Of a DNA stretch of 64,000 nt, positions 30,082-64,000 are shown piece by piece. The number at the start of each line of letters is the position of its first letter. Positions within the stretch are counted from its first letter, which is position 1. The stretch lies in the NCBI GenBank assembly GCA_002104905.1, contig MCFE01000270.1:42891-106890 (forward strand), written 5' to 3'. Under the pieces are notes generated by a model. That model saw only the letters and a program-made list of their open reading frames with translations, ran no database searches and had not been told where the DNA came from. A program made the translations under genes and the position numbers. Source of the DNA: Basidiobolus meristosporus CBS 931.73 (taxonomy: Eukaryota > Fungi > Basidiobolomycota).

Positions 30082-32319
30082 TGCTGTAAGAGTCTTGGAG
30101 ATATTGGAAGTGATTGGGAGAACAAGTAGATTATGTGGTTTTCACTTAATGATTCATTGAATGTAAAAGTAGTATTTATACTTTTACCTGGTCTTGGCAT
30201 TACAAACACATAGAATAGGCTAAGGAAGGTCCCAAGAATATGTGTGCAAAGCTTGGGGCTGTTTGGACAACTTTGAGAATTTTCATGTTCTGGGTACCTG
30301 GTATTTTGGTGAAAATATTCTAAGTAAATCCCAACAAGGAATTTGGTCAGTATTCTCTAGGATTTGAAGGTAATGATATAAGTGACTAAGTTAGGTGAAT
30401 ATTTAGGTGGAAATACAAATTTTTTGCAACACTCCCACTCAGCTAAATGTTCATACTGACTAGTCCTAATTTTGACCTAAGATATTCAAACTTGTCTCTA
30501 GCTAATGGTTTGGTAAATATGTCTGCAATCATTTCATCTGTAGGACAGTAAACTAAGCTAACTAAGTTATTCTCTATAGCTTCACGTATGAAATGATGTC
30601 TAATATCTATATGCTTGGTTCTAGCATGAAAAGTTGGATTTCTACCTAATTGTATACATCCTTGATTATCTTGAAATAAAGTAATAGGCGTTTTTTGACA
30701 TAGGCCTAAATCTGTAAGCAGCTTTCTTAACCACATTGCTTCTTTTGTAGCTTCACAGGCTGCCATATACTCTGCCTCTGTGGTGGAAAGTGCTACAGTT
30801 GGTTGCTTTCTTGAATTCCATGAAATTGCTCCTTTATAGTAAAGAAAGGTGCATCCTGTGGTGGATCTTCTGTCTTCTAAATTTTGTCCCCAATCTGCAT
30901 CAGAGTATCCCACAAGATCTTGTTCTGAGTCCTTATAGGTGTATCTTAAGCAAATATCAGCAGTTCCTTTTAGGTATCTAAAAATCCGCTTAACTACTGC
31001 AATGTCATCAGATCCATAGTTCTGATTATGTTGGCTGACAACTCCCACTGAATATGAGATATCTGGACGTGTTCCAAGCATGATATACATCAGACTGCCA
31101 ACCATAGATTGATAAGGAAAGTCAGGGCTTTCAGATGGCACCAAGCTCTCTTGATTTGGTTGAGTTTTGACCAAGTTAAGGTTTGTCTCCATTGGGGTAG
31201 CTGCCGGTTTACAGTCTTCCATTTTGTACTTCTTTAGTATAGCTGGAATATACTTGGATTGGCTAAGGGTAATAGTCTGGGTACTTCTGTCTATGGAGAA
31301 CTTAATCCCTAAGTAGTTACTAAGTTCTCCTAGATCGGACATCTTGAACTCCTTAGATAGGCTGGATTTAGTCTCTTCCAATGTTTCTAGGTTATTGGCG
31401 GCTATAATAAGATCATCCACATATAGAGCTAATAGAACTGGATTTGCTCTATCTGGCTTATAGTATATACTATAGTCAGCATTACTTCTTTTGAAACTCA
31501 AAGATTCCAAATAAGAATCTATCTTGCAATTCCAGGCTCTTGGTGATTGTTTGAGACCATATAGTGACTTTTTAAGCTTGCAGACCAAATGGGGGTTATC
31601 TTGGTCAATAAACCCATCAGGCTGGTCCATATACACATCCTCATCAAGTTCTCCATTCAACAATGCAGTTCTTACATCCATATGATGAATAAAAAACTTA
31701 TATTTGGCTGCAATTGCCAATATTAATCTGATGGAATTAAACTTGGCTACTGGTGCAAAGGTCTCTGTGTAGTCAAGTCCTTTTGTTTGAGAGTATCCTT
31801 TGGCTACAAGTCTTGCTTTGTATCTCTCAATTGTACCATCAGCCTTGTATTTTGTCTTGAAGACCCATCTGCATCCAATTAATTTTTGGTTGATTGGTAA
31901 TTTGACCAAGTCCCAAGTTTGATTTTCCATCAGGGCCTGATATTCCTCAGTCATTGCAGATCTCCAAAACTTTGTCTGAGGGCTATTTAGGGTCTCTTTT
32001 ACAGTCTGGGGTTCATCAATATGGACTGAAAAGGCATAGGCTAAGTTTGTACCCTCATTTATATAATAATTTGGCCTATTTCTTGTCCAATTGGATCTCT
32101 GAGCATTTGATACTGGAATGATCACTTCTGGGATATTCCTGGGCACTGATTCTGGCTGAACCACAGTTGTAGAGTCCTCTGGAGTGTAAAAATTTTCATT
32201 GTTTTGCTCTGATTCAATTCTGACAATTGATGGACTTGAGATCAAATTTTTGTCATCATCTGATGTCATTTTTTGTGAAAATTCTGAATTTTCATCAAAC
32301 AACACATCCCTGGACTTCA
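30082..32319 (-). mobile_element. Copia family B, 3' half with LTR 30082-30431; 5' truncated
   Basis: PPT complement ctcccactcagc at 30432-30443; truncated just upstream of SRDVLFDE; a ~49-bp duplicate of the LTR end at 30033-30081. Confidence 0.9.
30443..32305 (-). CDS. Copia-B pol fragment: uninterrupted RT + RNase H (620 aa)
   Basis: YKARLVAKGY, LKKSLYGLKQSPRAW, LYVDDL, GYSDADW, STTEAEY, KHIDIRHHFIRE, ADIFTK all in one frame. Confidence 0.9.
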   Translation of the reverse strand: MLFDENSEFSQKMTSDDDKNLISSPSIVRIESEQNNENFYTPEDSTTVVQPESVPRNIPEVIIPVSNAQRSNWTRNRPNYYINEGTNLAYAFSVHIDEPQTVKETLNSPQTKFWRSAMTEEYQALMENQTWDLVKLPINQKLIGCRWVFKTKYKADGTIERYKARLVAKGYSQTKGLDYTETFAPVAKFNSIRLILAIAAKYKFFIHHMDVRTALLNGELDEDVYMDQPDGFIDQDNPHLVCKLKKSLYGLKQSPRAWNCKIDSYLESLSFKRSNADYSIYYKPDRANPVLLALYVDDLIIAANNLETLEETKSSLSKEFKMSDLGELSNYLGIKFSIDRSTQTITLSQSKYIPAILKKYKMEDCKPAATPMETNLNLVKTQPNQESLVPSESPDFPYQSMVGSLMYIMLGTRPDISYSVGVVSQHNQNYGSDDIAVVKRIFRYLKGTADICLRYTYKDSEQDLVGYSDADWGQNLEDRRSTTGCTFLYYKGAISWNSRKQPTVALSTTEAEYMAACEATKEAMWLRKLLTDLGLCQKTPITLFQDNQGCIQLGRNPTFHARTKHIDIRHHFIREAIENNLVSLVYCPTDEMIADIFTKPLARDKFEYLRSKLGLVSMNI

Positions 32320-39124: not shown

Positions 39125-41434
39125 TCATGGGTCATACAACTCCCAGCTTCTGAGCCATTCACGTGACTCAAGGTCTTTGGCAGGGTAATCAAATCCGAAG
39201 GCAAATGGTGCAAAGTAAACAAACACTCCAGCCAACAAGACCAGAGCTCCAACCAGCACCGCCCATTGGATGAGCGAGGAGCGCTCTCGAGTGCCGAAGT
39301 CGATCAAGAAGCTGGTCATAAAAATGGCGTAGTAGAGAGCGGGAAAATAATGATGCAGGTATGTGACTCGACCCATTAGAAAGAAGGGGAAGTAGTGCAG
39401 AAACCATCCAGTGAACAGCATCTTCCCGACCTGAAGGAACTTATTTGCCCGGATGGAATTCCTGAAGAGAAGTATGTTGCGTTGACTAGCGATGACCTGG
39501 GCTGCGTATATACTTGCGAAGATAACAATGGAGGCTGCCCCACCCCACCATATTACGGGATGGCCGATCAACCAGTACTTTGTGTCTTCATTTCCCCATG
39601 AGCACATCCTCAGCGCGGTGTTAAGCAGTGGCCAGTCTACGGGTGCCGAGGCGAGCTTATCGATACGATCAGAATCAGGGACGAGCGCGTTGTTTGTCTT
39701 CCACATCGCATGATTCAAGTGTAGAAAATCGGCCCAAAAGCTGGTCTGCAGATCGTGCGGCTCGGCTTTGGGTAAATGCTCATTTTGATGGCTCTCGATG
39801 TTCCATATAGTGTTCGATCCCCACCCCCCCTCCGGATCACAAGTAACCTCTCCTTGGCCATATCCCCATTCTGGTAAAGTTTTCGTGTTGGTCCTCAGAA
39901 CGCACCCCGTCGATCGATGACGGAGACGGAATCTCGTGGTTAGAGAGCGAATTTTTTCTGGCTTGGCCACCACCATATCGTCTAGAATCTCTATATACCA
40001 GTAATCATTGGTGTCTCCGAAAGTGCTATTTCCATATGCGCTCGCTTCGAATTGACCTTCGGTCAATGGGGCTGGAATTCCGTGTGAATGAAGATTTCCA
40101 CCAGTAGTCACGTGGGCCAATCGTATCAAGTCCCCGTTTTTCACTAGGGAGACATCTTCACTGCGAGGCTGGGATTCCTCCCTGGGCTTTAGCACGAACC
40201 AGTTGTTATTTTCGTCTTTATGGCCATATATTGTGACTTGCTGTTGATGAGATCCCGTGGGGTAAAAGTGAGCGTGTGAGTGTAACAGACCGTTGAACTC
40301 GCCATTACTCCTCAAAGTTATGGAGGAGCCATAAGCCAGTTCTAAAGGGACGTTCTTCAGATCGCTACCCTCCAGGTTAGCTTGAAATAGCGATGACATG
40401 ACTCCATCGCTTTTACCGCTCTTCGTTAGTAGAGAAAAGTGGACTTTGAAGCAGGCAACGTATATCCCGAACGGTATAAGGATCAAGCAAATCACTCTGG
40501 AAAGCCAATGCATCACATACTTGACCTTGGGCATCTCGTAGTCACCAAACTTCACCCATAGATCTTCGATCGTCTGAACTCCAACCCAGGCCGTGGTGAA
40601 CAGGCCCACCCACTTGACACTCGCCACACAGCCTATACTTACTCCGGTGAACACCAGCCAGCTCCACCACTTTAGGGAAAACGCGCTATTGTGGTGATAG
40701 CGAAACCCAGAGAATCCCCAAAGAGTGCTTGCTGTGAAGCAAAGAAGTATAGGATCTAGCAGAATGAATCTACTGATTGTGAGTGTAGTTGTATCCATCA
40801 GCACCATACATGCGCACAGAAACGCTCCCTTCTTTGTGTATCCAAGATTCAGACAGGTCCAATAGGATAGTGGTATCATCAGGGCTCCAAAAGCGGCAGT
40901 AAACTGCCTCATCCGAAGGTAATCCAGATTCTCGGGATAATTTTCTCCGCTGTTAAAGTTGTACGACCCATCGTAGCCAGCAAGGTATCCGCCCAGTCCG
41001 ACAAGCATTTTTCCTAGCGGCGGGTGCACATCATGGTAGAATTCATGGCGCAGATAATATGAGCCAAACTAAATAGAGAGTTAGTCGATGCTCGGCCAAG
41101 CTGGGTACAGTGGTGCACAAACTTTTCCGAAGTGAGCTTCGTCCCAGACCACCTTGTTGGCCTTGCCCAGTTGATAGAAGCGTGTAAAGATGGCCATAGA
41201 TGTCAGAAAGATAACGGACCCCCATACAGCAAAGGTGTTTTTCTAGTTGAAATGTAAATAAATGGGGTTGAATGAAACCGTACGTTGGCGAGCTATTACC
41301 CATTGAGAGAATGTGACTCTGCTTATGCTGCCAGGTGTTTTTTCTTTGGCTGTGAAGTCGTCCGGCACGGCAGGTCCAACTGGCTTTTTTAGTTGTTGCT
41401 TTTTATGACGAAGACGCAGGTTGTCCCATACCAT
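39125..41434 (-). CDS. PMT2: Dolichyl-phosphate-mannose:protein O-mannosyltransferase, PMT2 subfamily (paralog a)
   Basis: [32 protein letters not shown] signature across introns; MIR domains (LHSH); [10 protein letters not shown]. Confidence 0.92.
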
Positions 41435-42532: not shown

Positions 42533-44833
42533 ATGGTATCTGAACCTTTGCGGCAAAGACACGCCAAAAAACCTGGGTCGAAACTACCCTCGAACAATGA
42601 GGTTTTGGAAACAAAGGATGTCAAGGTTCATTCGGAACCTGTGAAACAATCCAAGGTGAGTCGCTCAGGCGGCTGTTGTGTTTGGTCCTTTGGCTCATCA
42701 ACCCATGCAATTAACTTGTAGTGCTCGCATATTGACTGGATCGTGGTGCTGATCCTGACAGGACTCTCGATTTTCACCCATTACTTCCAGCTAGCCAAAG
42801 CTGGAAGAGTCATCTGGGATGAATCTCACTTTGGAAAGGTAGTAATTGGTTGCAATGTTCGGCCGCCACATCTTGGCTAACAGGCTTATCATACCTAGTT
42901 TGGCTCTTTCTACCTTCGTCGCGAGTTTTACCACGACGTTCATCCTCCACTTGGTAAGATGTTGGTCGCACTAGGCGGCTACCTGTCCGGCTACGACGGA
43001 TCGTTTGATTTCGGAAGCGGCGGCACTTACACCGAAGGAATGAACTATCATGGAATGCGCATGTTCACCGCATTTTTCGGCATGGTCATGGTGCCCGTAG
43101 CGTACCTGACCGCTTTGAATTTCGGGTATACGCGTAAATGCGCCTTCTTGGCTGCTTCCATGGTGTTATTGGATACAACTACATTGGTGATCACCAGGTT
43201 TATCCTTCTTGATCCGATGCTGCTTTGCTTCACTGCGACCACCGGGCTAGCCTTGTCTTACTTCCGTAAACACAAGCACGCCGAATTCTCCACCAAGTGG
43301 TGGATCGGGCTTGTTGCAACCGGCGTCAACCTGGGACTCGTGGCTTCCGTCAAGTGGATCGGCCTTTTCACCATCGCCTGGGTTGGCTGGGATACCATCG
43401 AGGAATTGTGGGACAAGTTCGGGGACTACAAGATGCCAAAGTTGCGCTATCTTCAACACTGGATTGCTCGCGCAATCTGCTTGATCGTCATACCTTTGAG
43501 TATTTATGTCGCCTGCTTCAAGATTCACTTTGCTATCCTGACCAGAAGTGGCAAAGACGATGGTGTCATGAGCTCATTGTTCCAGGCCAACTTGGAAGGT
43601 AGTGAGCTCAAGTCCGTTCCTCTCGAATTAGCCTATGGTTCTGTGGTGACTGTGCATGGGTCTACTGGGCTCCTTCATTCCCATTCCCATCTTTACCCTG
43701 AAGGTTCGAAGCAACAGCAAATCACGACGTATACTTACAAGGACTCCAACAACGAATGGAAGGTTCTGAAGCCAAGAAACGTGGAGCAACCAGCCGAGGA
43801 AGATGCTGTGCTGGTGAAGGATGGGGACTTGATCAGACTGGTCCATACCGCCACCCAGGCCAATCTCCACGCGCACAAAGTTCAAGCCCCAGTCAGCAAA
43901 GCCCACTGGGAAGCCAGTGCTTACGGAAACCTTACATTTGGTGATCAGAACGATTACTGGTATATCGAGGTTCTTGACGATGTCAACACGAAGACCGAAT
44001 ATATCCGCACCCTGACCACCCGATTCCGCTTACGTCACCAAGGGACTGGATGCATCCTCAGGACCACTTCGGAGAATCTTCCTGCCTGGGGCTACAACCA
44101 AGGGGAAGTCGCCTGCGATAAGGAGACCAGCTACTGGGGACAGGGTGCCGTGTGGAATATCGAGGGACATGTTAACCAGCACCTGCCAATTGCCGAGCCC
44201 CAAAACTTCAAAACCAGCTTCTGGCATGACTTCGTTCACCTCAACATTGCTATGTGGAGAACAAACAATGGGTTGATCCCTGACCCAGACAAGGACGATC
44301 ACCTGGCATCTCAGCCCTACGAATGGCCCCTTTTGATAACCGCCATGAGAATGTGCTCGTGGGGAGATAACGACATCAAGTTCTGGCTAGTGGGCCATCC
44401 CTTTATCTGGTGGGGCAGCATCCTGGCATTGTGCAGTTTCGTCGGCATCACTGGGCTCTACCTGATCATGCAACAGAGAAGAATTCAGCTATTCGGCAGC
44501 TCGGCCAGATCCAACGAATTCTTCCCTCTTGGAAGATTACTGTTTGTCGGCTGGTTCCTGCACTATTTCCCGTTCTTCTTGATGGGACGTGTCACCTACC
44601 TGCATCATTATTTCCCAGCGTTGTACTTCGCCATCTTCATGTTCACCTTCTTGATCGACTTCTTCATCAAGAACCGCTCGGAGTTCGTTCAATGGGCCGT
44701 GGTGTTGGCCGTATTCTCGGTTACCCTGTGGGTGTTCCTGTTGTACAGTCCGTTCGTATTCGGATTTGATTATCCAGCCCGGGATCTGGCCAATAGAGAG
44801 CTGCTTAATCGTTGGAAGTTATACAATCGGTAA
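42533..44833 (+). CDS. PMT2: O-mannosyltransferase, PMT2 subfamily (paralog b)
   Basis: [32 protein letters not shown]; same domain layout, and the intron after HFGK is in the same position as in paralog a. Confidence 0.92.
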
Positions 44834-53377: not shown

Positions 53378-55485
53378 TTAGTCGATGTCGGCGTCGAACT
53401 GGTACTTCTCGACTACCTCTTGGAACATCGTCTTGCAGGGCACATCCGCCTTCAATTTCGAGCAAAGCAAGAACGCTCCAGAAAGCTTTCGATGAAGACT
53501 GTATGTTTCGTCGGGAGGTGGGGTGAGTCGGTGGCGAATCATCGTTGGTATGGTGTCGGTGACGCGGTCGGTGATGGTCTGTGTGGAGAATGGATAGACG
53601 TCGGGCGCGTCTACTTGGAAAGGCTCCCCGAGGGTTAGCATGGAGTCCACGTGCGCTTGGTTCATGACCTCGGTCTCGTAGCCGGTGAGGAATCCAAGCT
53701 TGCGAGAATAGTGAAGGCAGCCCTCACGATCCTTGTTAGTTGCGGCAATCAGGTTCTTCAGATAAAGGTCCACAAATTTCTTGTTGAAGCCACGGCTGGC
53801 TCCAAAGTCCAAGAGCTCGATCTAAAAGAACCAGTTAGAAGGTGTGGGCTGTGGTTAATCAAAAATCACCGAGAACCTTCTTGGTCTTCTCGTTGTAGAG
53901 GAAGTTGGTCCAGTTGGGATCGGTCTGCATGTAGCGGAACTCGAACAACTCACGCAGACATAGTCTTAGGATCTTCTCGCCAATCTGAAGGAAGCATGCC
54001 CGGTTAGCACTTCAACTGCCGATGAGTGATTCATCCCGCTTACCATATTCCGGGTTTGCTGATCAAAGCGAGACGCCTTGTTCAATGGGACGCCGTTCAT
54101 GAATTCCGTGGTCAGGATCATTGATGTGGACAGCTCTGGGTACATCTTCGGCACGTCGAAGTGGGGATCGTTCTCCAAGTAGGATCGGAAGGTCTCTATG
54201 CATTGGGCCTCACGGTCATAATCGCATTCCCAGCCAAGCTCTCGTCTCATGGCCTTGATGGAGTTATCCAAGTAAAGGCCTTTCGGAAGCAGGCTGCTCA
54301 TCAACAAGAGCGACTTTAAGCTCTTCAAATCCCCATCAATCGACTGGGCAACTCCGGGGTATTGCACCTTAACGGCCACCAAAGTGTTATCCGGGAGTTT
54401 GGCTCGGTGGACTTGTCCAATGGAGGCGGCGGCAACCGGAATGGTCTCGAAATCCATGAATTTCTCTCGCCACTCGGCCCCCAGCTGCTCCTTCATGATG
54501 GACTCCAGTTGAGACTGCGGCATGTAATTGGCGCTGTTTTGGACTCTAGTCAGGATTTCCTGAAGCTGAGGTGGGAGCAATTTGTTGTCCTGGATACTAA
54601 TCATCTGGCCCAGCTTAAGGGCAGCTCCGCGCATGCGTGACAATTTGGTCACCAGACGGTCCACATTAGCTTCGCTCATAAATACGTTGCCGGAAAGGGA
54701 AGAGCTTCCGGTGGCCCGACGAACAGCCTCACCAACGGCCCCAAACCCAATGCCCAAGCCCAAGCCTGCATTTTCACTAAATAAGCGATCCATTGAGAGG
54801 GGTGACTAATGATACTTACTGCCATATTGCCACAAGCGGCCAATTCGACTAGTGGGGACCTTGGATTCCTTGAGCAGAACTTTTGGATCCTGCGAAGGCA
54901 TTACTTTCAATCGCTCTTGGTTGCTTGAACGAAAAGCTTCCTTACCTCGTAGGCTACCTCTTCGACGAAACCAACCGGCTGCGAGCCCAAGATTGGCTCC
55001 GGAGCGTTGATGCCGGTGGGCTTTTCTTGTTCCACCTCCTTGCTATTGAATGGGGGAACGCCTGACGTTGGTGTGAGGTCTATATGAGGCTCCTTAGGGG
55101 GTTTTACTTGCTCTAAATGAGGTCTAGCCTCTACTCTCTGCTCTGTCGCTACACTGGAAGCTACGTTGTTGGATACACTGTCCAACGGCTCTACCGGAGT
55201 AGGAACTTCCACTGGGGATTTTGGGATGGTGGCTGCTCCAGTGTAATTGGCCTCCGGAAGGTTGTTTTCAGGCTGTATCGGAGTTATCGAAGGGAACTTG
55301 CCAACTTCCGTTTGGGTTGCGGCGAATGATTTCACGGTATTCTGCGAGGTTTGGGCGAGTCTAGTGAGGGAAGAAGTTTTCAAGTGATATTTCACGGACT
55401 CTGCTTGGTTTCTGGCAACCCTGAAGGCTACATTACCGGCCACGTCCAACAACGAATATAGATCACCAAGCCTCTTTGAACCCAT
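53378..55485 (-). CDS. COQ8: Mitochondrial atypical kinase COQ8/ABC1 (UbiB family), multi-exon
   Basis: [72 protein letters not shown]. Confidence 0.93.
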
Positions 55486-56399: not shown

Positions 56400-57440
56400 A
56401 TGTATTCCCCGCTTTATAGTTTCACCCCATTCGACCTATTTGGCCAGCAACATATACATCAGCAGCCATCTTGGTATTTTCAGCAATCGCAGCCAGAAGA
56501 ATATCTCTTTCCCGAACACATCGCCACGCAGCCTAGCCTGTACAGATATCCCATGATGCAACCTCGACATTGCCATTCCCAACAGCCAGGAAAATGCTAT
56601 GTACTACCATCCAGACACCCAGGTCCACTTGCTCGGGAGTTCTTAAGCCCTCGCTCCACTACAGGATACATGGATATTGAGGAATCGCAGCAGCCTTTCG
56701 AAGTTCGCCCAGGTTGGTCTGAAGACGAGCAATCGTCCGATTCCGAGCAGGATGTAGATTTGGGCCAGCCAGCATTCACAAGCTCCCAGTCTACCCACAG
56801 TGGCACTCAACAAGTCAACGAGCGATCAAGAAGCAGGAAAAGATCGCACGACACCCTGAAGCCACAGCAGCCACACAAGAAACGTAGTGGAAAAGAAAAG
56901 AGACGCGACCGTAAGTCCAAAAAAACCCATCGCAAAGAAACCAAGAGATGGAAAGAAGCGGTCCAGCAATTCAGGTATAATCGGGCAGTAAAGCTCATCC
57001 AACGTCAGTGGCGTCTTTACCAACAAAAGCGTAGAGAAGAGGCGTCCAGAAAGATCGTGGGATTTATCCATGCGCGCCTAGAAATCCGTCAAGCACAGCA
57101 GGTTCTACAGCATCTCCGACAACTGCGCTCTTTCGAGACAGAACTTGATCTCACACACGAACGCCAGGCCCCTAGAGTTTTCAAGCGGCCCCTCAAGTTT
57201 GCTTCCGATTCAACCCCGGAATCGATAAAAATCCCGCCGGTGAAGGAAAACCAGTGCTATCTTGGGTACGAAGATGCTTTGCTAAGGCTACTCATGCGTA
57301 TTGATGGAGTTGACAGTATTGGGTCGGACATTGTGCGGCATGCCAGAAAGTCCTTGGTGAATAAGACCCAGTCCCTCTTGGATCAACTCGATGAATTCAA
57401 GAAATCCCAATATAGCACGTTGGTTACAAGTCGCAATTAA
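56400..57440 (+). CDS. IQ-motif + BAG-domain protein (putative Hsp70 co-chaperone), single exon
   Basis: AVKLIQRQWRLYQQK IQ-like motif; C-terminal YEDALLRLLMRIDGVDSIGSDIVRHARKSLVNKTQSLLDQLD BAG consensus. Confidence 0.8.
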   Translation: MYSPLYSFTPFDLFGQQHIHQQPSWYFQQSQPEEYLFPEHIATQPSLYRYPMMQPRHCHSQQPGKCYVLPSRHPGPLAREFLSPRSTTGYMDIEESQQPFEVRPGWSEDEQSSDSEQDVDLGQPAFTSSQSTHSGTQQVNERSRSRKRSHDTLKPQQPHKKRSGKEKRRDRKSKKTHRKETKRWKEAVQQFRYNRAVKLIQRQWRLYQQKRREEASRKIVGFIHARLEIRQAQQVLQHLRQLRSFETELDLTHERQAPRVFKRPLKFASDSTPESIKIPPVKENQCYLGYEDALLRLLMRIDGVDSIGSDIVRHARKSLVNKTQSLLDQLDEFKKSQYSTLVTSRN

Positions 57441-58687
57441 TGACGAAAGGCCAGTTGTATCATATTTTACTCATTAATGCATCCACCAGCCGTCTCGATC
57501 AACATATTACATCCCATATCACCTCAACAGTAATAAATCATCTGTGTATAATACCACACTGTACTGCGTGCGCTTTCTTTCGAATGAAAGAGTCAACACT
57601 AAGCCATGAGGGGCATTGGTTGTTACTTAGTATTGAGTTGAGGCAGCGATAGAGATCCAGTGTAGTTCTAGTTGGAGGGAGTCTCAGTCTATGTCGGTGC
57701 TGGTAGAAAGAGCTACCCGCGTTAATGACATGCGATAGTTCTGGCGACTGGAGTTATAGCTCTGGGTGATACTAGTGACCTATGCCGAGGCACAGAGCCT
57801 CAATGCAAGAAAGGTGGTAGACACCCGTAGGGTGATATGAGATGCCTTAGTAACATGTAAATTCCCTGCCCCCGTGCAACTGTCTAAGCCTGAATATACA
57901 TAGATGCCACCTGTATTCATACCTTCAGCAACATAGTCAACTGACTCTGCTAAGACTGCCAGTGTCGGTTAGTTTGGTAGGGAATAAATCAAAATGAGAA
58001 CTTCGTACTTTGTAAATATCTTGGTGGACTTCGCGAATTAACTCAATACTCAAATTTGTGTCTAACAAATTGTGGAAACACGAAGAATGGCTATTTTCAA
58101 ATTGCCCATTAGCCCCTGAGTATTGCATATATCCTTCCATATTCTTCAAAACATTTTGATAGGTACCTTTAGCAAGTTCCTACGCCCAATAAATATACTG
58201 GTTGAATCCACTCATTACCTATGCAACTCCAGGTCAAAATCCAACTTACATATTTCAGAAGGTCCAGCATATAGTAAATTGTAGAAATCCACTTGGTAGA
58301 AGTTAATTTGCACTCAGTGCTATCAACAAAATCTGTACTAATATTACACACTCATTGTGATATACTGCCAAGCCATATGCTGGAGACTTGATTACTAACT
58401 CTGGTATTTTTTGTTTCCAATAGAGTATACTTCCAAACTTAAGAAGTTTTGTGAGTTTCAAACCTCTGCAAAGGACCTCATACTGCCATATTGCCCCCAG
58501 TTATCCCAGTGAAGGCCTAAATGTTATTGTATTCCCAAATTTATACCAAAGGCCCCAATATTTGTACACTACCTCCTGAAACCTTTCTTCTAGCACTCTT
58601 GCCATTTTCCCACAAAGCTCCCCTTACAGTGTACACATATCATCAGAGCTCAATAAAGCAAACCTTCCAGCTCTCCAGGTCATCTGA

Positions 58688-59410
58688 TTAGGGGGAGGGA
58701 AAGTCACCAAAGTAGGTGAAATCTTTATTTGATTTCAGACAAGTCTAACTACAAATAAAGAAGCCAGCTGGGAATAGAAGATTCCCAAAGTAAAAACTAA
58801 GTTGACTATAAATAAATCTAAGCTAAAGTTAAGGCAGTATCCCAGAGTACACTGGAGTTCAGGTTCATGGGGGAGTGAAGTAGATAAGCTTGAGAGATAT
58901 AATAATCTTTTAAGAAGTGGGTAACAGCAGGTGAAGGGGAGTTTTTGATAAGTGAAGTGAATCTTGAGATCAGAGATTCCTCTAATGAGAAGGTCTTGTA
59001 AACTGGAGAATCAGGAAACTCTTTGAAGGCATGGTCAGTAGGTTCCCAGTAAAACTGGTCAGAGACATTTTGAGAGAATCGTTTAGCAATACTTTTGTCA
59101 AGTACTACCTCCAGAGTGTGATGGTTGATAAATCTCATGTTGACAATCTTGGATAAGTTGTAACCTTGTTGCTTGAGATACATCCTATGCTCAGATATAG
59201 GAATAAACTCCACATTGGCAAAGTAGCAGACAGCCCAGTCAGTAGCAGGAGGCAAATCAGAAGTGGCAGGAAACTTTCTTTTGGTCTTGGGAGGAGCAGC
59301 AGGATGTCTTGAGGAAGCAGGAACAGACTTTTTGACAACTTCAGAGTAGGAAGAGTGAGCAGGAGCAGATGATTCTTGGGGAGTCTTGATGGCAGGAAGA
59401 GTTGGCACAC
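58688..59410 (-). mobile_element. Telomeric retroelement module A, copy A1 (5'-truncated)
   Basis: Co-linear with 62734-63447; 3' end joined to unique DNA through a single TTAGGG at 58688-58693. Confidence 0.9.
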
Positions 59411-60488
59411 TTAGGGGGGAGACAGTCACCAACAGGTGAAATCTTTATTTCAGTTGAAACAAAGAAGCCAGCGCTACTGTTGTAGCTTTGATACAAGAGT
59501 GTGTAGCTGAGGGGAATTTGTAGGTAAGTTAATAAGAAGTGATGATAGTTCTTCAGTGCTCAAGACACTGTTCAGTGGGAAGGGGGATAGCAAGAGAGGT
59601 AAGAATGACTTGTGAACAACATTAATGAGGGGAATGTGATAAGGATTGATGTTCATCATAAAGGGAGTGTGCTGCTGCAGATATTGCTGCCAAAGGTCTG
59701 TCAAGTACTTCAGGTAGGCCAGCTTGGGTTTTTCTGACTGCAGAATGTAGTGAGCAAACTTCTTGACTTCAGGATCTCCAAGTATAGTTCTCCAGCAGGA
59801 GCCAGGTATTGTGTGGTGTGTTCTCTTCCAGGCCTTAATCAGTGGGTTGTTGCAGTTGTGAAGTCTGAGGTATAATCTGGTTCTAAGGTAGAGAAGTCTG
59901 ATCTTATAGGGCATAAACCCAAAAGCACCAAGAATAGCATGTCTGTAGGGGCATTCAGGCAAATGAGGCACCAAGGAGGTAATGCACCATACTGCAAACT
60001 TGTCAAGCTTAGTGCAGTCTCTAGAAGTAAGAGAGAGAGAAGTGGTAAGCCAAATTCCAGGACAGGGAAGACAAACTGCTTGAGTAGAAGGAGGCAGCTG
60101 GGAGCTGAAGTTGTAGGAGGAGTAACAGCCAGTAGCTTGTGGAGTGCCTGTCTTGCTAGGATAATTCTCTTCTTCAGGTGTGCTCCAGAGTCTAGTCCAG
60201 TAGGAAGGAAAGGAAAGCCAAGATATGTAGCAGAAACCTGAGCAGGTAGAGTGAAGTTCTCCAAGTTGATGGGAGAGCCCAAAGGTACTGTCTTTGCAAT
60301 GGAAAGCTGGAGATTATTCTTCTGCAGATACTGGTGGATGGTCTGGGAGTCTTGTTGCACATTGGAGGAGGATATTCTGATGTCATCAGCAAAGAGAGTA
60401 ACCAGGCAGTCAGCTGAGAGTCTTGGGAAATCATTCAGGAAGATGGCAAACAGTATAGGACCAAGCACAGAGCCTTGAACCACTCCAT
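59411..60488 (-). mobile_element. Telomeric retroelement module B, copy B1 (5'-truncated RT)
   Basis: Near-identical to 60501-61577; begins inside the RT (GVVQGSVLGP); 3' end TTAGGG-GGG at 59411. Confidence 0.92.
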
Positions 60489-60506
60489 TTAGGGTTAGGG
60501 TTAGGG
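60489..60506 (+). repeat. Interstitial (TTAGGG)3 between B1 and B2
   Basis: ccat-ttagggttagggttaggg-gggg-agacagtcacc. Confidence 0.95.
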
Positions 60507-62712
60507 GGGGAGACAGTCACCAACAGGTGAAATCTTTATTTCAGTTGAAACAAAGAAGCCAGCGCTACTGTTGTAGCTTTGATACAAGAGTGTGTAGCTG
60601 AGGGGAATTTGTAGGTAAGTTAATAAGAAGTGATGATAGCTCTTCAGTGCTCAAGACACTGTTCAGTGGGAAGGGGGGTAGCAAGAGAGGTAAGAATGAC
60701 TTGTGAACAACATTAATGAGGGGAATGCGATAAGGATTGATATTCATCATAAATGAAGTGTGCTGCTGCAGATATTGCTGCCAAAGGTCTGTCAAGTACT
60801 TCAGGTAGGCCAGCTTGGGTTTTTCTGACTGCAGAATAAAGTGAGCAAACTTCTTGACTTCAGGATCTCCAAGTATAGTTCTCCAGCAGGAGCCAGGTGT
60901 TGTGTGGTGTGTTCTCTTCCAGGCCTTAATCAGTGGGTTGTTGCAGTTGTGAAGTCTGAGGTATAATCTGGTTCTAAGGTAGAGAAGTCTGATCTTATAG
61001 GGCATAAACCCAAAAGCACCAAGAATAGCATGTCTGTAGGGGCATTCAGGCAAATGAGGCACCAAGGAGGTAATGCACCATACTGCAAACTTGTCAAGCT
61101 TAGTGCAGTCTCTAGAAGTAAGAGAGAGAAGTGGTAAGCCAAATTCCAGGACAGGGAAGACAAACTGCTTGAGTAGAAGGAGGCAGCTGGGAGCTGAAGT
61201 TGTAGGAGGAGTAACAGCCAACAGCTTGTGGAGTGCCTGTCTTGCAAGGATAATTCTCTTCTTCAGGTGTGCTCCAGAGTCTAGTCCAGTAGGAAGGAAA
61301 GGAAAGCCAAGATATGTAGCAGAAACCTGAGCAGGTAGAGTGGAGTTCTCCAAGATGATGGGAGAGCCCAAAGGTACTGTCTTTGCAATGGAAAGCTGGA
61401 GATTATTCTTCTGCAGATACTGGTGGATGGTCTGGGAGTATTGTTGTACATTGGAGGAGGATATTTGATGTCATCAGCAAAGAGAGTAACCAGGCAGTCA
61501 GCTGAGAGTCTTGGGAAGTCATTCAGGAAGATGGCAAACAGTATAGGACCAAGCACAGAGCCTTGAACCACTCCATTAGGAACTGAGAACACAGCTGATT
61601 GCTCACTTGGGTGCAGAATTCTTGCTTGTGGATCCAGAAACAGAGACCTGATAAGGAGGGTGAGAGAGGTACTGGAGAAGCATTGCAGCTTGGACCAAAG
61701 CAGATTTCTGTCAACTGAATCAAAGGCCTTAGTAATATCAAACAGAACAGAGGGATACTTGCACTGGAGAGAGTGATCTTGGCTAAGTATGACTGCATAT
61801 TCCAAGGAGAGGCCAGGAACAAAGCCAAACTGTGCAGGATGAAACTTGAGGGAGTCAGAGTAGAGCTCCTGAGCAAGCAGAAGCTCAAACACCTTTCTGC
61901 AGGAGGGCAGCAGAGATATTGGCCTGTAGGAGCTAGGATCCGGGTGCTTTCCTTTACCCTTATACAGTGGCAGAACATTTGCAAAGGACCATTCCACAGG
62001 AGTAGAAAGCTGGGCTGAGCATTGTTGAAACAGTGGAAGCAGAAGTGCAGACATGGCCTTGGTACTAGTCTTCAGAAGCTCATAGGGGATTGTGTCCACA
62101 CCTGGAGCAGTAGAGTTGGGAAGCCTCTTGAGCACATTATGGATTCTCCTTTGATCAAGTGCAATTGGGATGGGCAGAGTCTTGAAGTCAGGATGAAAGC
62201 CAGGAGTTGAGTACTGCTTTGTAGAGAAGAAGATGTTAGCCAGCTGTTCTGTTGAAGGTAACTTCCTGGAAGAGGGCCTCATTGCTCTGTAGAGTCTTGA
62301 TACTGTTCTTGTTATAGAGTTGGAAGATTGCAGAGGCAAAGAACTCATAATATGATCCCAGAGCTGAGTATGCAGAGTGTGGTGAATTGCCTTGGAGTGG
62401 TGTATTGCTGTCAGGAGGAGTTTCTCTGTTTTTGGGTTAGGGAAACTCAGGTAGCTTTGTTGCAGGGCTGAAACAATGGATTCCCATTTTCTTGAGGCAA
62501 CAGCAGTAGTCTTGCATGGCAGTGAGAGGGAGGCAGACACCAGAATCAGATGCTTCACAAAGAGCCAGGCATAGTTGAGATCATCTGGCAGAGAAAGTAG
62601 CAAACTGGCAAGCTTCAAGTAGTTCCCAAAGTCTTTCTTCTGATTCTTTGTAGCTTTGTGGGTGAGCACAGTAAGTTTTGGCAGCTTCTTCTTCACAACT
62701 GGTTGCATAGAA
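60507..62712 (-). mobile_element. Telomeric retroelement module B, copy B2 (longest)
   Basis: Bounded by telomeric repeats on both sides; contains the RT ORF and a 58-nt 3' UTR. Confidence 0.92.
60565..62708 (-). CDS. Non-LTR (LINE-type) reverse transcriptase, ~714 aa after correcting one 1-bp deletion near 61466; no endonuclease domain recognised
   Basis: APGVDTIPYELLK, YRPISLL, QFGF, FDITKAFDSV, GVVQGSVLGPILF, LFADD, TYLG; frame restored by comparison with B1. Confidence 0.9.
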
Positions 62713-62733
62713 GGGTTAGGGTTAGGGTTAGGG
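62713..62733 (+). repeat. Interstitial GGG(TTAGGG)3 between B2 and A2
   Basis: catagaa-gggttagggttagggttaggg-gagggaaagtcacc. Confidence 0.95.
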
Positions 62734-63750
62734 GAGGGAAAGTCACCAAGGTAGGTGAAATCTTTATTTGATTGCAGACAAGTCTAACTACAAATAAAGA
62801 AGCCAGCTGGGAATAGAAGATTCCCAAAGTAAACACTAAGTTGAATATGAATAAATCTAAGCTAAAGTTAAGGCAGTATCCCAGAGTACACTGGAGTTCA
62901 GGTTCATGGGGGAGTGAAGTAGATAAGCTTGAGAGATATAATAATCTTTGAGGAAGTGGGTAACAGCAGGTGAAGGGGAGTTTTTGATAAGTGAAGTGAA
63001 TCTTGAGAGCAGAGATTCCTCTAATGAGAAGGTCTTGTAAACTGGAGAATCTGGAAACTCTTTAAAGGCATGGTCAGTAGGTTCCCAGTAAAACTGGTCA
63101 GAGACATTTTGAGAGAACTCTTTAGCAATACTTTTGTCAAGTACTACCTCCAGAGTGTGATGGTTGATAAATCTCATGTTAACAATCTTGGATAAATTGT
63201 AACCTTGTTGCTTGAGATACATCCTATGCTCAGATAGAGGAATGAACTCCACATTGGCAAAGTAGCAGACAGCCCAGTCAGTAGCAGGAGGCAAATCAGA
63301 AGTAGCAGGAAACTTTCTTTTAGTCTTGGGAGGAGCAGCAGGATGTCTTGAGGAAGCAGGAACAGGCTTTTTGACAGCTTCAGAGTAGGAAGAGTGAGCA
63401 GGAGCAGATGATTCTTGGGGAGTCTTGTTGACAGGAACAGCTGGCAGAGAGACAATAGATTCTTGCAGATCAGAGAAGGCAGAAAACAGCTTTTGAACTT
63501 GTTTCTTGAGTAAAGCATTTTCAGCTTCAACAAGTGCAAGCCTTTCCTCAAGGAAGGAAATCTGAAGGGAATGGAGGGAAGGCATAAGAAATAAGAAGAA
63601 GAGGGTAAGATGGGGTGGGTGGGTGGGAAAATTAGCAGGGAGAAGAGAAGGAAGGAGCAAAAATTCCAGAAGTCAGAATTTATAGATGGATGGACAAGGG
63701 TAGATGGATGGATTATTCCTGGGTTAGGAAAATTAGCAGGGAGAAGAGAA
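62734..63750 (-). mobile_element. Telomeric retroelement module A, copy A2 (longest), abutting the telomere
   Basis: Contains an intact ORF; shares the 3' terminal motif with B. Confidence 0.9.
62857..63585 (-). CDS. ORF1-like protein (242 aa from the first ATG): N-terminal coiled coil, S/P-rich linker, alpha/beta domain
   Basis: LEERLALVEAENALLKKQVQKL heptads; SYSEAVKK motif; conserved between A1 and A2; ORF1/RRM-like identity is inference. Confidence 0.7.
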   Translation of the reverse strand: MPSLHSLQISFLEERLALVEAENALLKKQVQKLFSAFSDLQESIVSLPAVPVNKTPQESSAPAHSSYSEAVKKPVPASSRHPAAPPKTKRKFPATSDLPPATDWAVCYFANVEFIPLSEHRMYLKQQGYNLSKIVNMRFINHHTLEVVLDKSIAKEFSQNVSDQFYWEPTDHAFKEFPDSPVYKTFSLEESLLSRFTSLIKNSPSPAVTHFLKDYYISQAYLLHSPMNLNSSVLWDTALTLA

Positions 63751-64000
63751 GGGTTAGGGTTAGGGTTAGGGTTAGGGTTAGGGTTAGGGTTAGGGTTAGG
63801 GTTAGGGTTAGGGTTAGGGTTAGGGTTAGGGTTAGGGTTAGGGTTAGGGTTAGGGTTAGGGTTAGGGTTAGGGTTAGGGTTAGGGTTAGGGTTAGGGTTA
63901 GGGTTAGGGTTAGGGTTAGGGTTAGGGTTAGGGTTAGGGTTAGGGTTAGGGTTAGGGTTAGGGTTAGGGTTAGGGTTAGGGTTAGGGTTAGGGTTAGGTT
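63751..64000 (+). repeat. Telomere (TTAGGG)n, about 41 units, G-strand running to the end of the window
   Basis: Uninterrupted tandem TTAGGG to the last bases of the sequence. Confidence 0.98.

Follow-up and report, generated by a model that had tools for sequence, protein, structure and literature searches.

Insects, Giardia, green algae, rotifers and a few higher fungi are known to harbour retrotransposons specialised for telomeres. In the Drosophila case, that of the HeT-A, TART and TAHRE elements, the copies are stacked in head-to-tail arrays with their 5' ends outward, some copies are 5'-truncated, the outermost copy is the youngest, and an element with an apurinic/apyrimidinic-type endonuclease (APE) and a reverse transcriptase (RT) stands beside an abundant partner that codes only for a protein of the Gag/ORF1 type (ORF, open reading frame). 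The array described here, at a contig end of the fungus Basidiobolus meristosporus CBS 931.73 (assembly of 89.5 Mb in 1,366 contigs), is alike in all of these respects. It forms the end of the window, by which we mean the whole stretch of 64,000 nucleotides that was analysed (C558:42891-106890), and it consists of copies of two elements that lack long terminal repeats (non-LTR elements), namely B, an APE-type long interspersed nuclear element (LINE), and A, an ORF1-only partner that shares with B a 3' tail ending in a telomere unit. We consider it probable that the region is a Basidiobolus chromosome end built by successive additions of such elements, primed mostly at nearly bare G-strand ends. 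A full-text literature search, the coverage of which was incomplete, found no paper on telomeric elements of Basidiobolus.

The Drosophila elements replace telomerase, whereas in Basidiobolus the elements coexist with telomerase repeats and with telomerase reverse transcriptase (TERT). An earlier sequence-only reading of this DNA had recognised repeats of the telomerase type, which do make up the terminal TTAGGG arrays, and had left TERT to be looked up; TERT is present, as a Telomerase_RBD match above the curated cut-off on contig C935. In addition, the Basidiobolus junctions carry a TTAGGG unit where those of Drosophila carry oligo(A), and the Basidiobolus partners have a short 3' tail in common. 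The TRAS1 and SART1 elements of Bombyx (R1 clade) are, like B, APE LINEs in a host with telomerase-type repeats; TRAS elements also have the same orientation, the sense strand being continuous with the C-strand, and the TRAS1 endonuclease is the best structural match to that of B. TRAS and SART elements, however, are poly(A)-tailed and are inserted inside tracts of the repeat, SART1 needing at least three telomere units (PMC7265360), whereas the Basidiobolus tail is itself a telomere unit and the tracts are mostly of one unit or less. In function, the Basidiobolus system is closest to HeT-A/TART and TRAS/SART, and it is set apart from both by its telomere-unit tail and its short junction tracts.

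Fungal hosts are shared with MoTeR, FoTeR and Cnl1, which also show subtelomeric head-to-tail arrays, as formed by Cnl1 (10.1101/2021.08.11.455996), together with variable 5' tandem repeats and telomere-like 5' motifs. These three have a single ORF, belong to the CRE/SLACS clade and carry a C-terminal restriction-like endonuclease of the PD-(D/E)XK type (PMC12857005), whereas B has an N-terminal APE domain, a separate ORF1, and partners that are either ORF1-only elements or short interspersed nuclear elements (SINEs). Enzymes of this restriction-like sort are what the literature search turned up among the telomeric non-LTR elements of fungi, in contrast to the APE-type B. The Athena and Coprina elements are likewise terminal, and their RNA likewise has a 3' end with reverse-complement telomeric sequence, which is thought to pair with the G-overhang (PMC8557442); this is a likeness of mechanism only. 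The parallel with endonuclease-less Penelope-like elements that had been drawn from the letters alone failed on RT type, on the endonuclease and on hammerhead motifs, B having an APE domain and a LINE-type RVT_1 RT that is not TERT-like, and no hammerhead. Two further parallels come from vertebrates: the eel UnaL2/UnaSINE1, a stringent LINE/SINE pair with a shared 3' stem-loop and a short terminal repeat, and the mammalian HAL1 elements, which are non-autonomous and ORF1-only. Unlike either, the Basidiobolus terminal repeat is the telomere unit, and the members are confined to chromosome ends.

What the window adds is an ORF1-only partner whose ORF bears the marks of selection, a compensatory change in the tail hairpin, a junction census, and a correction of the view that the enzyme has no endonuclease. 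In an early-diverging fungus in which telomerase is present, an APE-type LINE tailed by the telomere unit is found together with a selected ORF1-only partner and SINEs, in a division of labour resembling that of HeT-A and TART on many chromosome ends. Such a system makes testable both the origin of Drosophila-type telomeres from telomerase-type ones and the healing of bare ends by LINE enzymes in nature.

Anatomy of the array and of its two elements

The right edge of the window coincides with the contig end (C558:106890). In agreement with the sequence-only reading, the array comprises four modules in the same orientation, designated A1, B1, B2 and A2 (Table 1). All ORFs lie on the minus strand, and all 5' ends are therefore directed towards the contig end, i.e., the telomere; each 3' end joins TTAGGG, as had also been stated, and each joint runs straight into a G-run followed by the conserved tail. 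The tail core, GGTGAAATCTTTATT, occurs four times in the 64-kb window against 0.25 expected from shuffled sequences, and all copies are on a single strand within the last 5.3 kb. By direct-repeat comparison, A1 (58692-59410) pairs with A2 (62731-63750), the two being 96-97% identical, and B1 (59414-60489) with B2 (60505-62712), which are 98% identical; the same comparison of the window found no terminal repeats flanking the copies, that is, no LTRs. The canonical 5' end of A2, ...GAGAAGAGAAG, abuts the terminal telomere directly. On the proximal side, the last 1.4 kb ahead of A1 (57300-58680) is single-copy in the genome. Judged by divergence from the family consensus (0.65% in B1 and 1.0% in B2; for A1 and A2 see Table 1), the array is only roughly younger outward, with the oldest copy in proximal and the youngest in terminal position. 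Read-based support for the array consists of short contigs from the source sample; among the contigs from public short-read runs of this sample, many differing truncated bodies are joined exactly at these tail starts.

The full structure of B, about 4.6 kb in length, was assembled from overlapping loci and coordinate searches and does not represent one single copy. From its 5' end, it consists of approximately 100-bp tandem repeats, the number of which differs among copies, a leader with an internal (CCCTAA)2, ORF1, an in-frame TGA, ORF2 of 917 amino acids, and a 3' untranslated region (UTR) of 70 nt. ORF1, at least 254 amino acids long in locus L012 and 437 in the relative L061, combines a zinc finger of the form CPNC...CKC with a coiled coil and, at the C-terminus, a conserved domain resembling the RNA recognition motif (RRM). 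It is to be noted that the two ORFs are in the same frame, one TGA apart (context UGA-CUA; L009:4330-4332, minus strand), and that ORF2 starts without an ATG; in L061, too, they share a frame, with 3 nt between them. Translation of ORF2 may depend on read-through of the stop codon or on reinitiation. Among the ORF2-spanning copies analysed, 13 of 23 were intact. The RT matched RVT_1 with an E value of 2.6e-25 and has the FADD motif; its nearest solved relative is human L1 ORF2p (E 6e-13), and Pfam recorded nothing C-terminal to it. Apart from five close relatives, the closest proteins in the database are unnamed ones that combine APE and RT, at about 30% identity.

The sequence-only reading had described B as a LINE-type RT without an endonuclease; the first half of this description stands, and the second does not. 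B2 had passed for a complete element of 2.2 kb, its ORF beginning 5 nt from the junction. Genomic copies that are matched by the whole of B2 extend at least 1.5 kb further, at 98-99% identity to one another, and other copies run about 2.4 kb past the 5' break of B2; at least 40 copies reach the 5' leader and carry ORF1 as well as an ORF2 in which an APE-fold endonuclease is combined with RT. The RT domain of B2 is itself frameshifted just after FADD, and the 5' truncation points vary among copies. The endonuclease region comprises the first ~200 residues of ORF2, where the Pfam matches are weak and below the curated cut-off (Exo_endo_phos_2, E 2.9e-4; Exo_endo_phos, 0.023). The APE motifs N, Y, GDLN (GDxN), D and SDH are kept in relatives at 45-55% identity, and the QET motif has Asp in place of the metal-binding Glu throughout the members and relatives of the family. 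An AlphaFold model of the region had a predicted local distance difference test score (pLDDT) of 81 and a predicted template modelling score (pTM) of 0.76, and a Foldseek search with it placed the TRAS1 endonuclease (1WDU) at the top (E 3e-8), with APE1 and the L1 endonuclease coming next (E to 1e-6). By fold and motifs, the N-terminus of ORF2 is an APE-type endonuclease, and B is an ordinary two-ORF APE LINE of which B1 and B2 are simply 5'-truncated copies. The term 'bipartite', in the sense of a B without ORF1, has to be dropped, B having an ORF1 of its own. For annotation, it follows that truncated copies at one end can wrongly suggest a nuclease-free enzyme. An endonuclease-less RT element, wholly dependent on free ends in the manner of Athena and Coprina, would account for the lack of the domain in both window copies of B and for a 3' reverse-complement telomeric unit like that of endonuclease-minus Penelope-like elements (PMC8557442). 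It is nonetheless a highly improbable explanation, considering that B1 and B2 are truncated, that the 40 or more longer copies have the APE domain, that the RT is of the RVT_1/L1-like kind, and that neither a hammerhead nor any other Rfam family was detected in 58000-64000 at E values up to 1.

Separate mobilisation of the ORF1-only partner, claimed by the same reading, was supported by its own 5' end, its own 5' repeats and an ORF that shows signs of selection. A is about 1 kb long, and its canonical 5' end (...CTTCTCTTCTCCCTGC, sense strand) recurs at many junctions and is fused directly to long telomere arrays on 12 contigs. Its 101-bp 5' repeats vary in number between copies, each unit containing GGGTTAGG, and it has a 3' UTR of its own. 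The ORF of 242 amino acids aligns with the last 160 residues of B ORF1 at 35% identity (E 4e-22) and is intact in 32 of 34 distinct copies. In the 31 gap-free copies, 72 non-synonymous variants were counted against 77 synonymous ones, where the neutral expectation is 3.4:1, and the variants present in at least two copies numbered 17 and 28, respectively. Since these counts are far below the neutral ratio, the A protein is, by the measure of its sequence variants, under purifying selection.

LINE-1 ORF1 proteins consist of a coiled coil, an RRM and a C-terminal domain, and this layout is resembled by the model of the A protein, in which the predicted parts are a long helix at the N-terminus, a linker that is disordered, a beta-alpha-beta-beta-alpha-beta domain and three C-terminal helices. 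The beta-alpha domain superposed on many RRM domains over about 65 residues, with Z of 5.7-8.2 and a root mean square deviation of about 2.4 A; this RRM-like fold was seen only in a wide structural search and at middling Z of 6-8. Foldseek with the same model gave no significant match, and a word-indexed protein search with the A protein gave no match. An exhaustive profile search of 1.84 billion proteins yielded a family of 24 representatives, none of them with a Pfam family. One A-like ORF1-only element was located in another assembly (GCA_040143965.1, JASJQH010002740.1, L063:1-1230), where it codes for 269 amino acids, 46% identical to A, and stands at a contig end with ~100-bp 5' repeats; its tail meets unique DNA via a C-run and TAACC, about 600 bp from a subtilase gene. 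The existence of this distant relative indicates that the ORF1-only lineage is old and not a recent deletion derivative. A itself, with a 5' end, 5' repeats and a 3' UTR of its own, is not a fragment of B. As a separate observation, the 5' repeats of A and B (window 63621-63752; L009:1326-1476) both hold GATGGATGGATGGATT on the G-rich strand, and this motif could be a common promoter or binding site.

The shared 3' tail and the junction census

Five families were found to have the same RNA-strand ending: B, A, a tRNA-headed SINE, and two families referred to as C and D. The order of elements in the tail is a (G/T)TGGCTTCTTT box, AAATAAAGATTT, TCACC, a variable loop of 4-6 nt, GGTGA, a stretch of pyrimidines, 4-9 consecutive C residues, and TAA(CCC). 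The 5-bp hairpin formed by TCACC and GGTGA is the structure predicted for all five tail-sharing families, and in the L063 element the stem reads ACACC/GGTGT, so that both sides have changed and the pairing is kept, which is a compensatory change. In a comparison of 58600-63740 of the window with reads of another sample that bears the same species label (run X6), the 45-50 nt tails were matched at 90% or higher and at high depth, and the bodies of A and B were matched only in a few short stretches of B (five 172-bp bins with word depth above 200); the tail thus appears more conserved than the element bodies. In stringent LINE/SINE pairs, the partners are recognised via the shared 3' end, and on this analogy we infer that the shared 3' module would let the B enzyme recognise its own RNA as well as that of its passengers.

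The SINE-like element is about 0.5 kb long, with a tRNA-like 5' head (GGATCCAGGATTTGAACCC...) and the same 3' tail (L049:960-1470, L054:945-1320). A rarer family, at L018:4560-5130, has ~90-bp 5' repeats, each with GGTTAGGGG, and is capped directly by the terminal telomere.

The junction census covered 60 fetched loci with 141 distinct tails, of which 45 belonged to B, 42 to A, 33 to the SINE, 10 to C and 11 to others; 132 junctions were parsed. The contigs of the relatives L061 and L062 end before the 3' tail and are uninformative on junctions. None of the 141 tails had poly(A) or oligo(A), the ends being a C-run with TAA(CCC). The number of whole TTAGGG units ahead of the tail was zero at 22 junctions, one at 79, two at 21, three at 6, four at 2 and five at 2, such that 101 of the 132 junctions had one whole unit or less and 110 had at least one, always in the same phase. 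At zero-unit junctions, part of a unit (AGGG or TAGGG) is mostly left, and in some cases a full-length A 5' end runs into the next tail without any telomere unit between them. The terminal arrays at 21 distinct contig ends, by comparison, measured 78 to more than 249 bp (13 to more than 41 units). Full-length B was present on at least 40 contigs. Unique DNA flanks the arrays proximally, and elements or telomere follow distally, with one clear exception (L035) and a few ambiguous cases, 'terminal' status being judged from truncated flanks and terminal TTAGGG arrays; the first elements join single-copy DNA via about one unit.

Nearly all arrays lie at right-hand (+) contig ends, e.g., 40 of 40 in one search, and this bias is probably an assembler convention or bias. 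It was also noted that array-bearing contig ends far outnumber the ends of a typical fungal karyotype.

The 132 junctions represent 116 distinct upstream contexts, and the only recurrent ones are the canonical 5' ends of A and the SINE. The arrays therefore, to judge from these junction sequences, trace back to many independent events and not to duplication. An alternative is that they arose mostly in single events, by template jumping, in which the RT would pass from one RNA's 5' end to the 3' tail of another, or were later spread by subtelomeric recombination of the kind proposed for the Cnl1 LINE arrays (bioRxiv 10.1101/2021.08.11.455996), and the alternative is favoured by those full-length 5' ends that abut the next tail with no intervening telomere unit. 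We think this improbable, because the contexts are mostly distinct and segmental copying is rare, most internal copies are 5'-truncated at unrelated points, and the copies in the window are of unequal age, their divergence from consensus ranging between 3.4% and 0.4%. An assembly artefact at a repeat-rich contig end, for which the highly repetitive nature of the region could be cited, is scarcely credible, since the same junction grammar, with distinct junctions, is seen on dozens of contigs and also in read-derived contigs and in another assembly.

Priming at the chromosome end

In the mechanism that we propose, B, as the autonomous member, would supply the enzyme, and A, as a non-autonomous element, would use it through the shared 3' module (GCUGGCUUCUUU box, AAUAAA, hairpin, C-run and UAA(CCC)). 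The C-run/CCCUAA end of the RNA would pair with the 3' end of the G-strand, the ORF2 RT would copy the RNA onto that end, and the new 5' end would become the chromosome tip. The tip would then be recapped by telomerase, as on A2, or trimmed by erosion before the next addition; as a matter of speculation, the GGGTTAGG in each 5' repeat unit of A could seed the recapping. The head-to-tail stacking has the polarity expected from priming of cDNA at the G-strand 3'-OH, on which point the sequence-only reading was correct, and an RNA ending in ...CUCCCCCC-UAA, if copied from a ...TTAGGG-3' primer, would give exactly TTAGGG-GGG-AGACAGTC. Three results favour nearly bare ends as the primers. First, the junctions mostly hold one unit or less as opposed to tens of units terminally, which argues against nicking in long arrays. 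Second, full-length 5' ends can meet the next tail without a telomere unit. Third, the first elements stand on unique DNA. The anatomy, homology, copy statistics and polarity are matters of direct observation; how priming takes place, and what part the endonuclease has in it, we infer.

The additions could also be of the TRAS/SART type, in which the APE endonuclease would nick the G-strand in double-stranded TTAGGG, preferentially at the proximal border, followed by ordinary target-primed reverse transcription, the chromosome end never acting as primer. The intact APE fold with its conserved motifs fits such a mode of action, which would explain why the nuclease has been retained, and the top structural match is none other than the telomere-specific endonuclease of TRAS1. 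The presence of at least one whole unit in constant phase at 110 of the 132 junctions is also in keeping with it, as is a microhomology of 1-5 nt between the 5' break points and the repeat, such as occurs in ordinary LINE 5' joining. On the other hand, the modal tract is one unit as against 13 to more than 41 in the terminal arrays, 22 junctions have no complete unit, including those where full-length 5' ends are joined directly to the next tail, the first elements meet single-copy DNA via a single unit, and SART1Bm depends on no fewer than three repeats and on a poly(A) tail (PMC7265360). Overall, we regard this mode as the chief alternative, possible but doubtful. The 5' microhomology to the telomere unit, which reached 1 nt or more at 30 of 36 junctions where chance predicts 28%, was considered as a discriminator of mechanisms and rejected, as it is predicted by both models.

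Several points weigh against priming at nearly bare ends. The endonuclease is conserved and, from its sequence, looks functional, with Glu to Asp as the only change, which is unexpected if priming proceeds without cutting. The short tracts could come from nicking that is restricted to the telomere-subtelomere border, and the TTAGGG unit at the junctions could be copied from the RNA. The transcript 3' ends were read from DNA copies only, and the order within the array from the assembly. Within the window, the divergences of B1 and B2 do not follow a monotonic order of age. Lastly, the array in L035 (2720-3400; C904, ~54.3-55.0 kb) is followed distally by non-telomeric DNA. On this distal side, telomere-like motifs of the G-strand and the C-strand occur in inverted order, and AT-rich low-copy DNA comes after them; the L035 array could be interstitial, an old end-to-end fusion or a misassembly.

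Tentatively, and with rather more doubt than belief, we suggest that the priming of additions at nearly bare ends may constitute a second, retroelement-based system of end repair beside telomerase, in which, whenever one of the very many ends lost its cap, ribonucleoproteins of the whole guild of tail-sharing elements (autonomous LINE, ORF1-only partner and SINE) would prime directly on the uncapped 3' end, no telomere tract being required, and the telomere-like motif of the 5' repeats would seed telomerase. If this is true, Basidiobolus would represent a living intermediate between telomerase-only and Drosophila-type telomeres.

Features of the window and neighbouring genes

Table 1 Positions of the array modules, telomeric tracts and upstream ORFs in the window
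Feature	Coordinates	Strand	Remarks
Ty1/copia-type RT ORF	30443-32305		upstream
Protein-O-mannosyltransferase ORF	39125-41029		upstream
Protein-O-mannosyltransferase ORF	42959-44833		upstream
ABC1 kinase ORF	53966-54793		upstream
BAG-domain ORF	56400-57440		upstream
Single TTAGGG unit	58688..58693	+	links unique chromosomal DNA to the A1 3' tail
A1, 5'-truncated copy of ORF1-only element A	58694..59410	-	3.4% from family consensus; oldest of the four
Shared 3' module of A1	58694-58770	-	as in A2
Single TTAGGG unit	59411..59416	+	separates the B1 tail from the A1 5' break
B1, 5'-truncated LINE copy	59417..60488	-	C-terminal part of RT and 3' UTR
Shared 3' module of B1	59417-59475	-	as in A2
(TTAGGG)3	60489..60506	+	between B1 and B2
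B2, 5'-truncated LINE copy	60507..62712	-	3' 2.2 kb (2,208 bp) of ~4.6 kb; RVT_1
Shared 3' module of B2	60507-60566	-	as in A2
GGG(TTAGGG)3	62713..62733	+	between B2 and A2
A2, full-length ORF1-only element	62734..63752	-	0.4% from consensus; youngest of the four
Shared 3' module of A2	62734..62810	-	GCTGGCTTCTTT box, AAATAAA, TCACC-loop-GGTGA hairpin, pyrimidine/C-run
Intact A ORF in A2, 242 aa	62857..63585	-	predicted coiled coil, disordered linker, RRM-like domain, C-terminal helices
A2 5' leader	63621..63752	-	~1.3 copies of the 101-bp repeat
Terminal TTAGGG array	63753..64000	+	~41 perfect units up to the contig end

Host genes nearly reach the array, as is evident from the two protein-O-mannosyltransferase genes, which are oriented divergently, the ABC1 kinase, and the BAG-domain ORF, which ends at 57440; an ORF for an RT of the Ty1/copia type is also found upstream. 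Ordinary genes are thus located within 1.3 kb of the first telomeric element.

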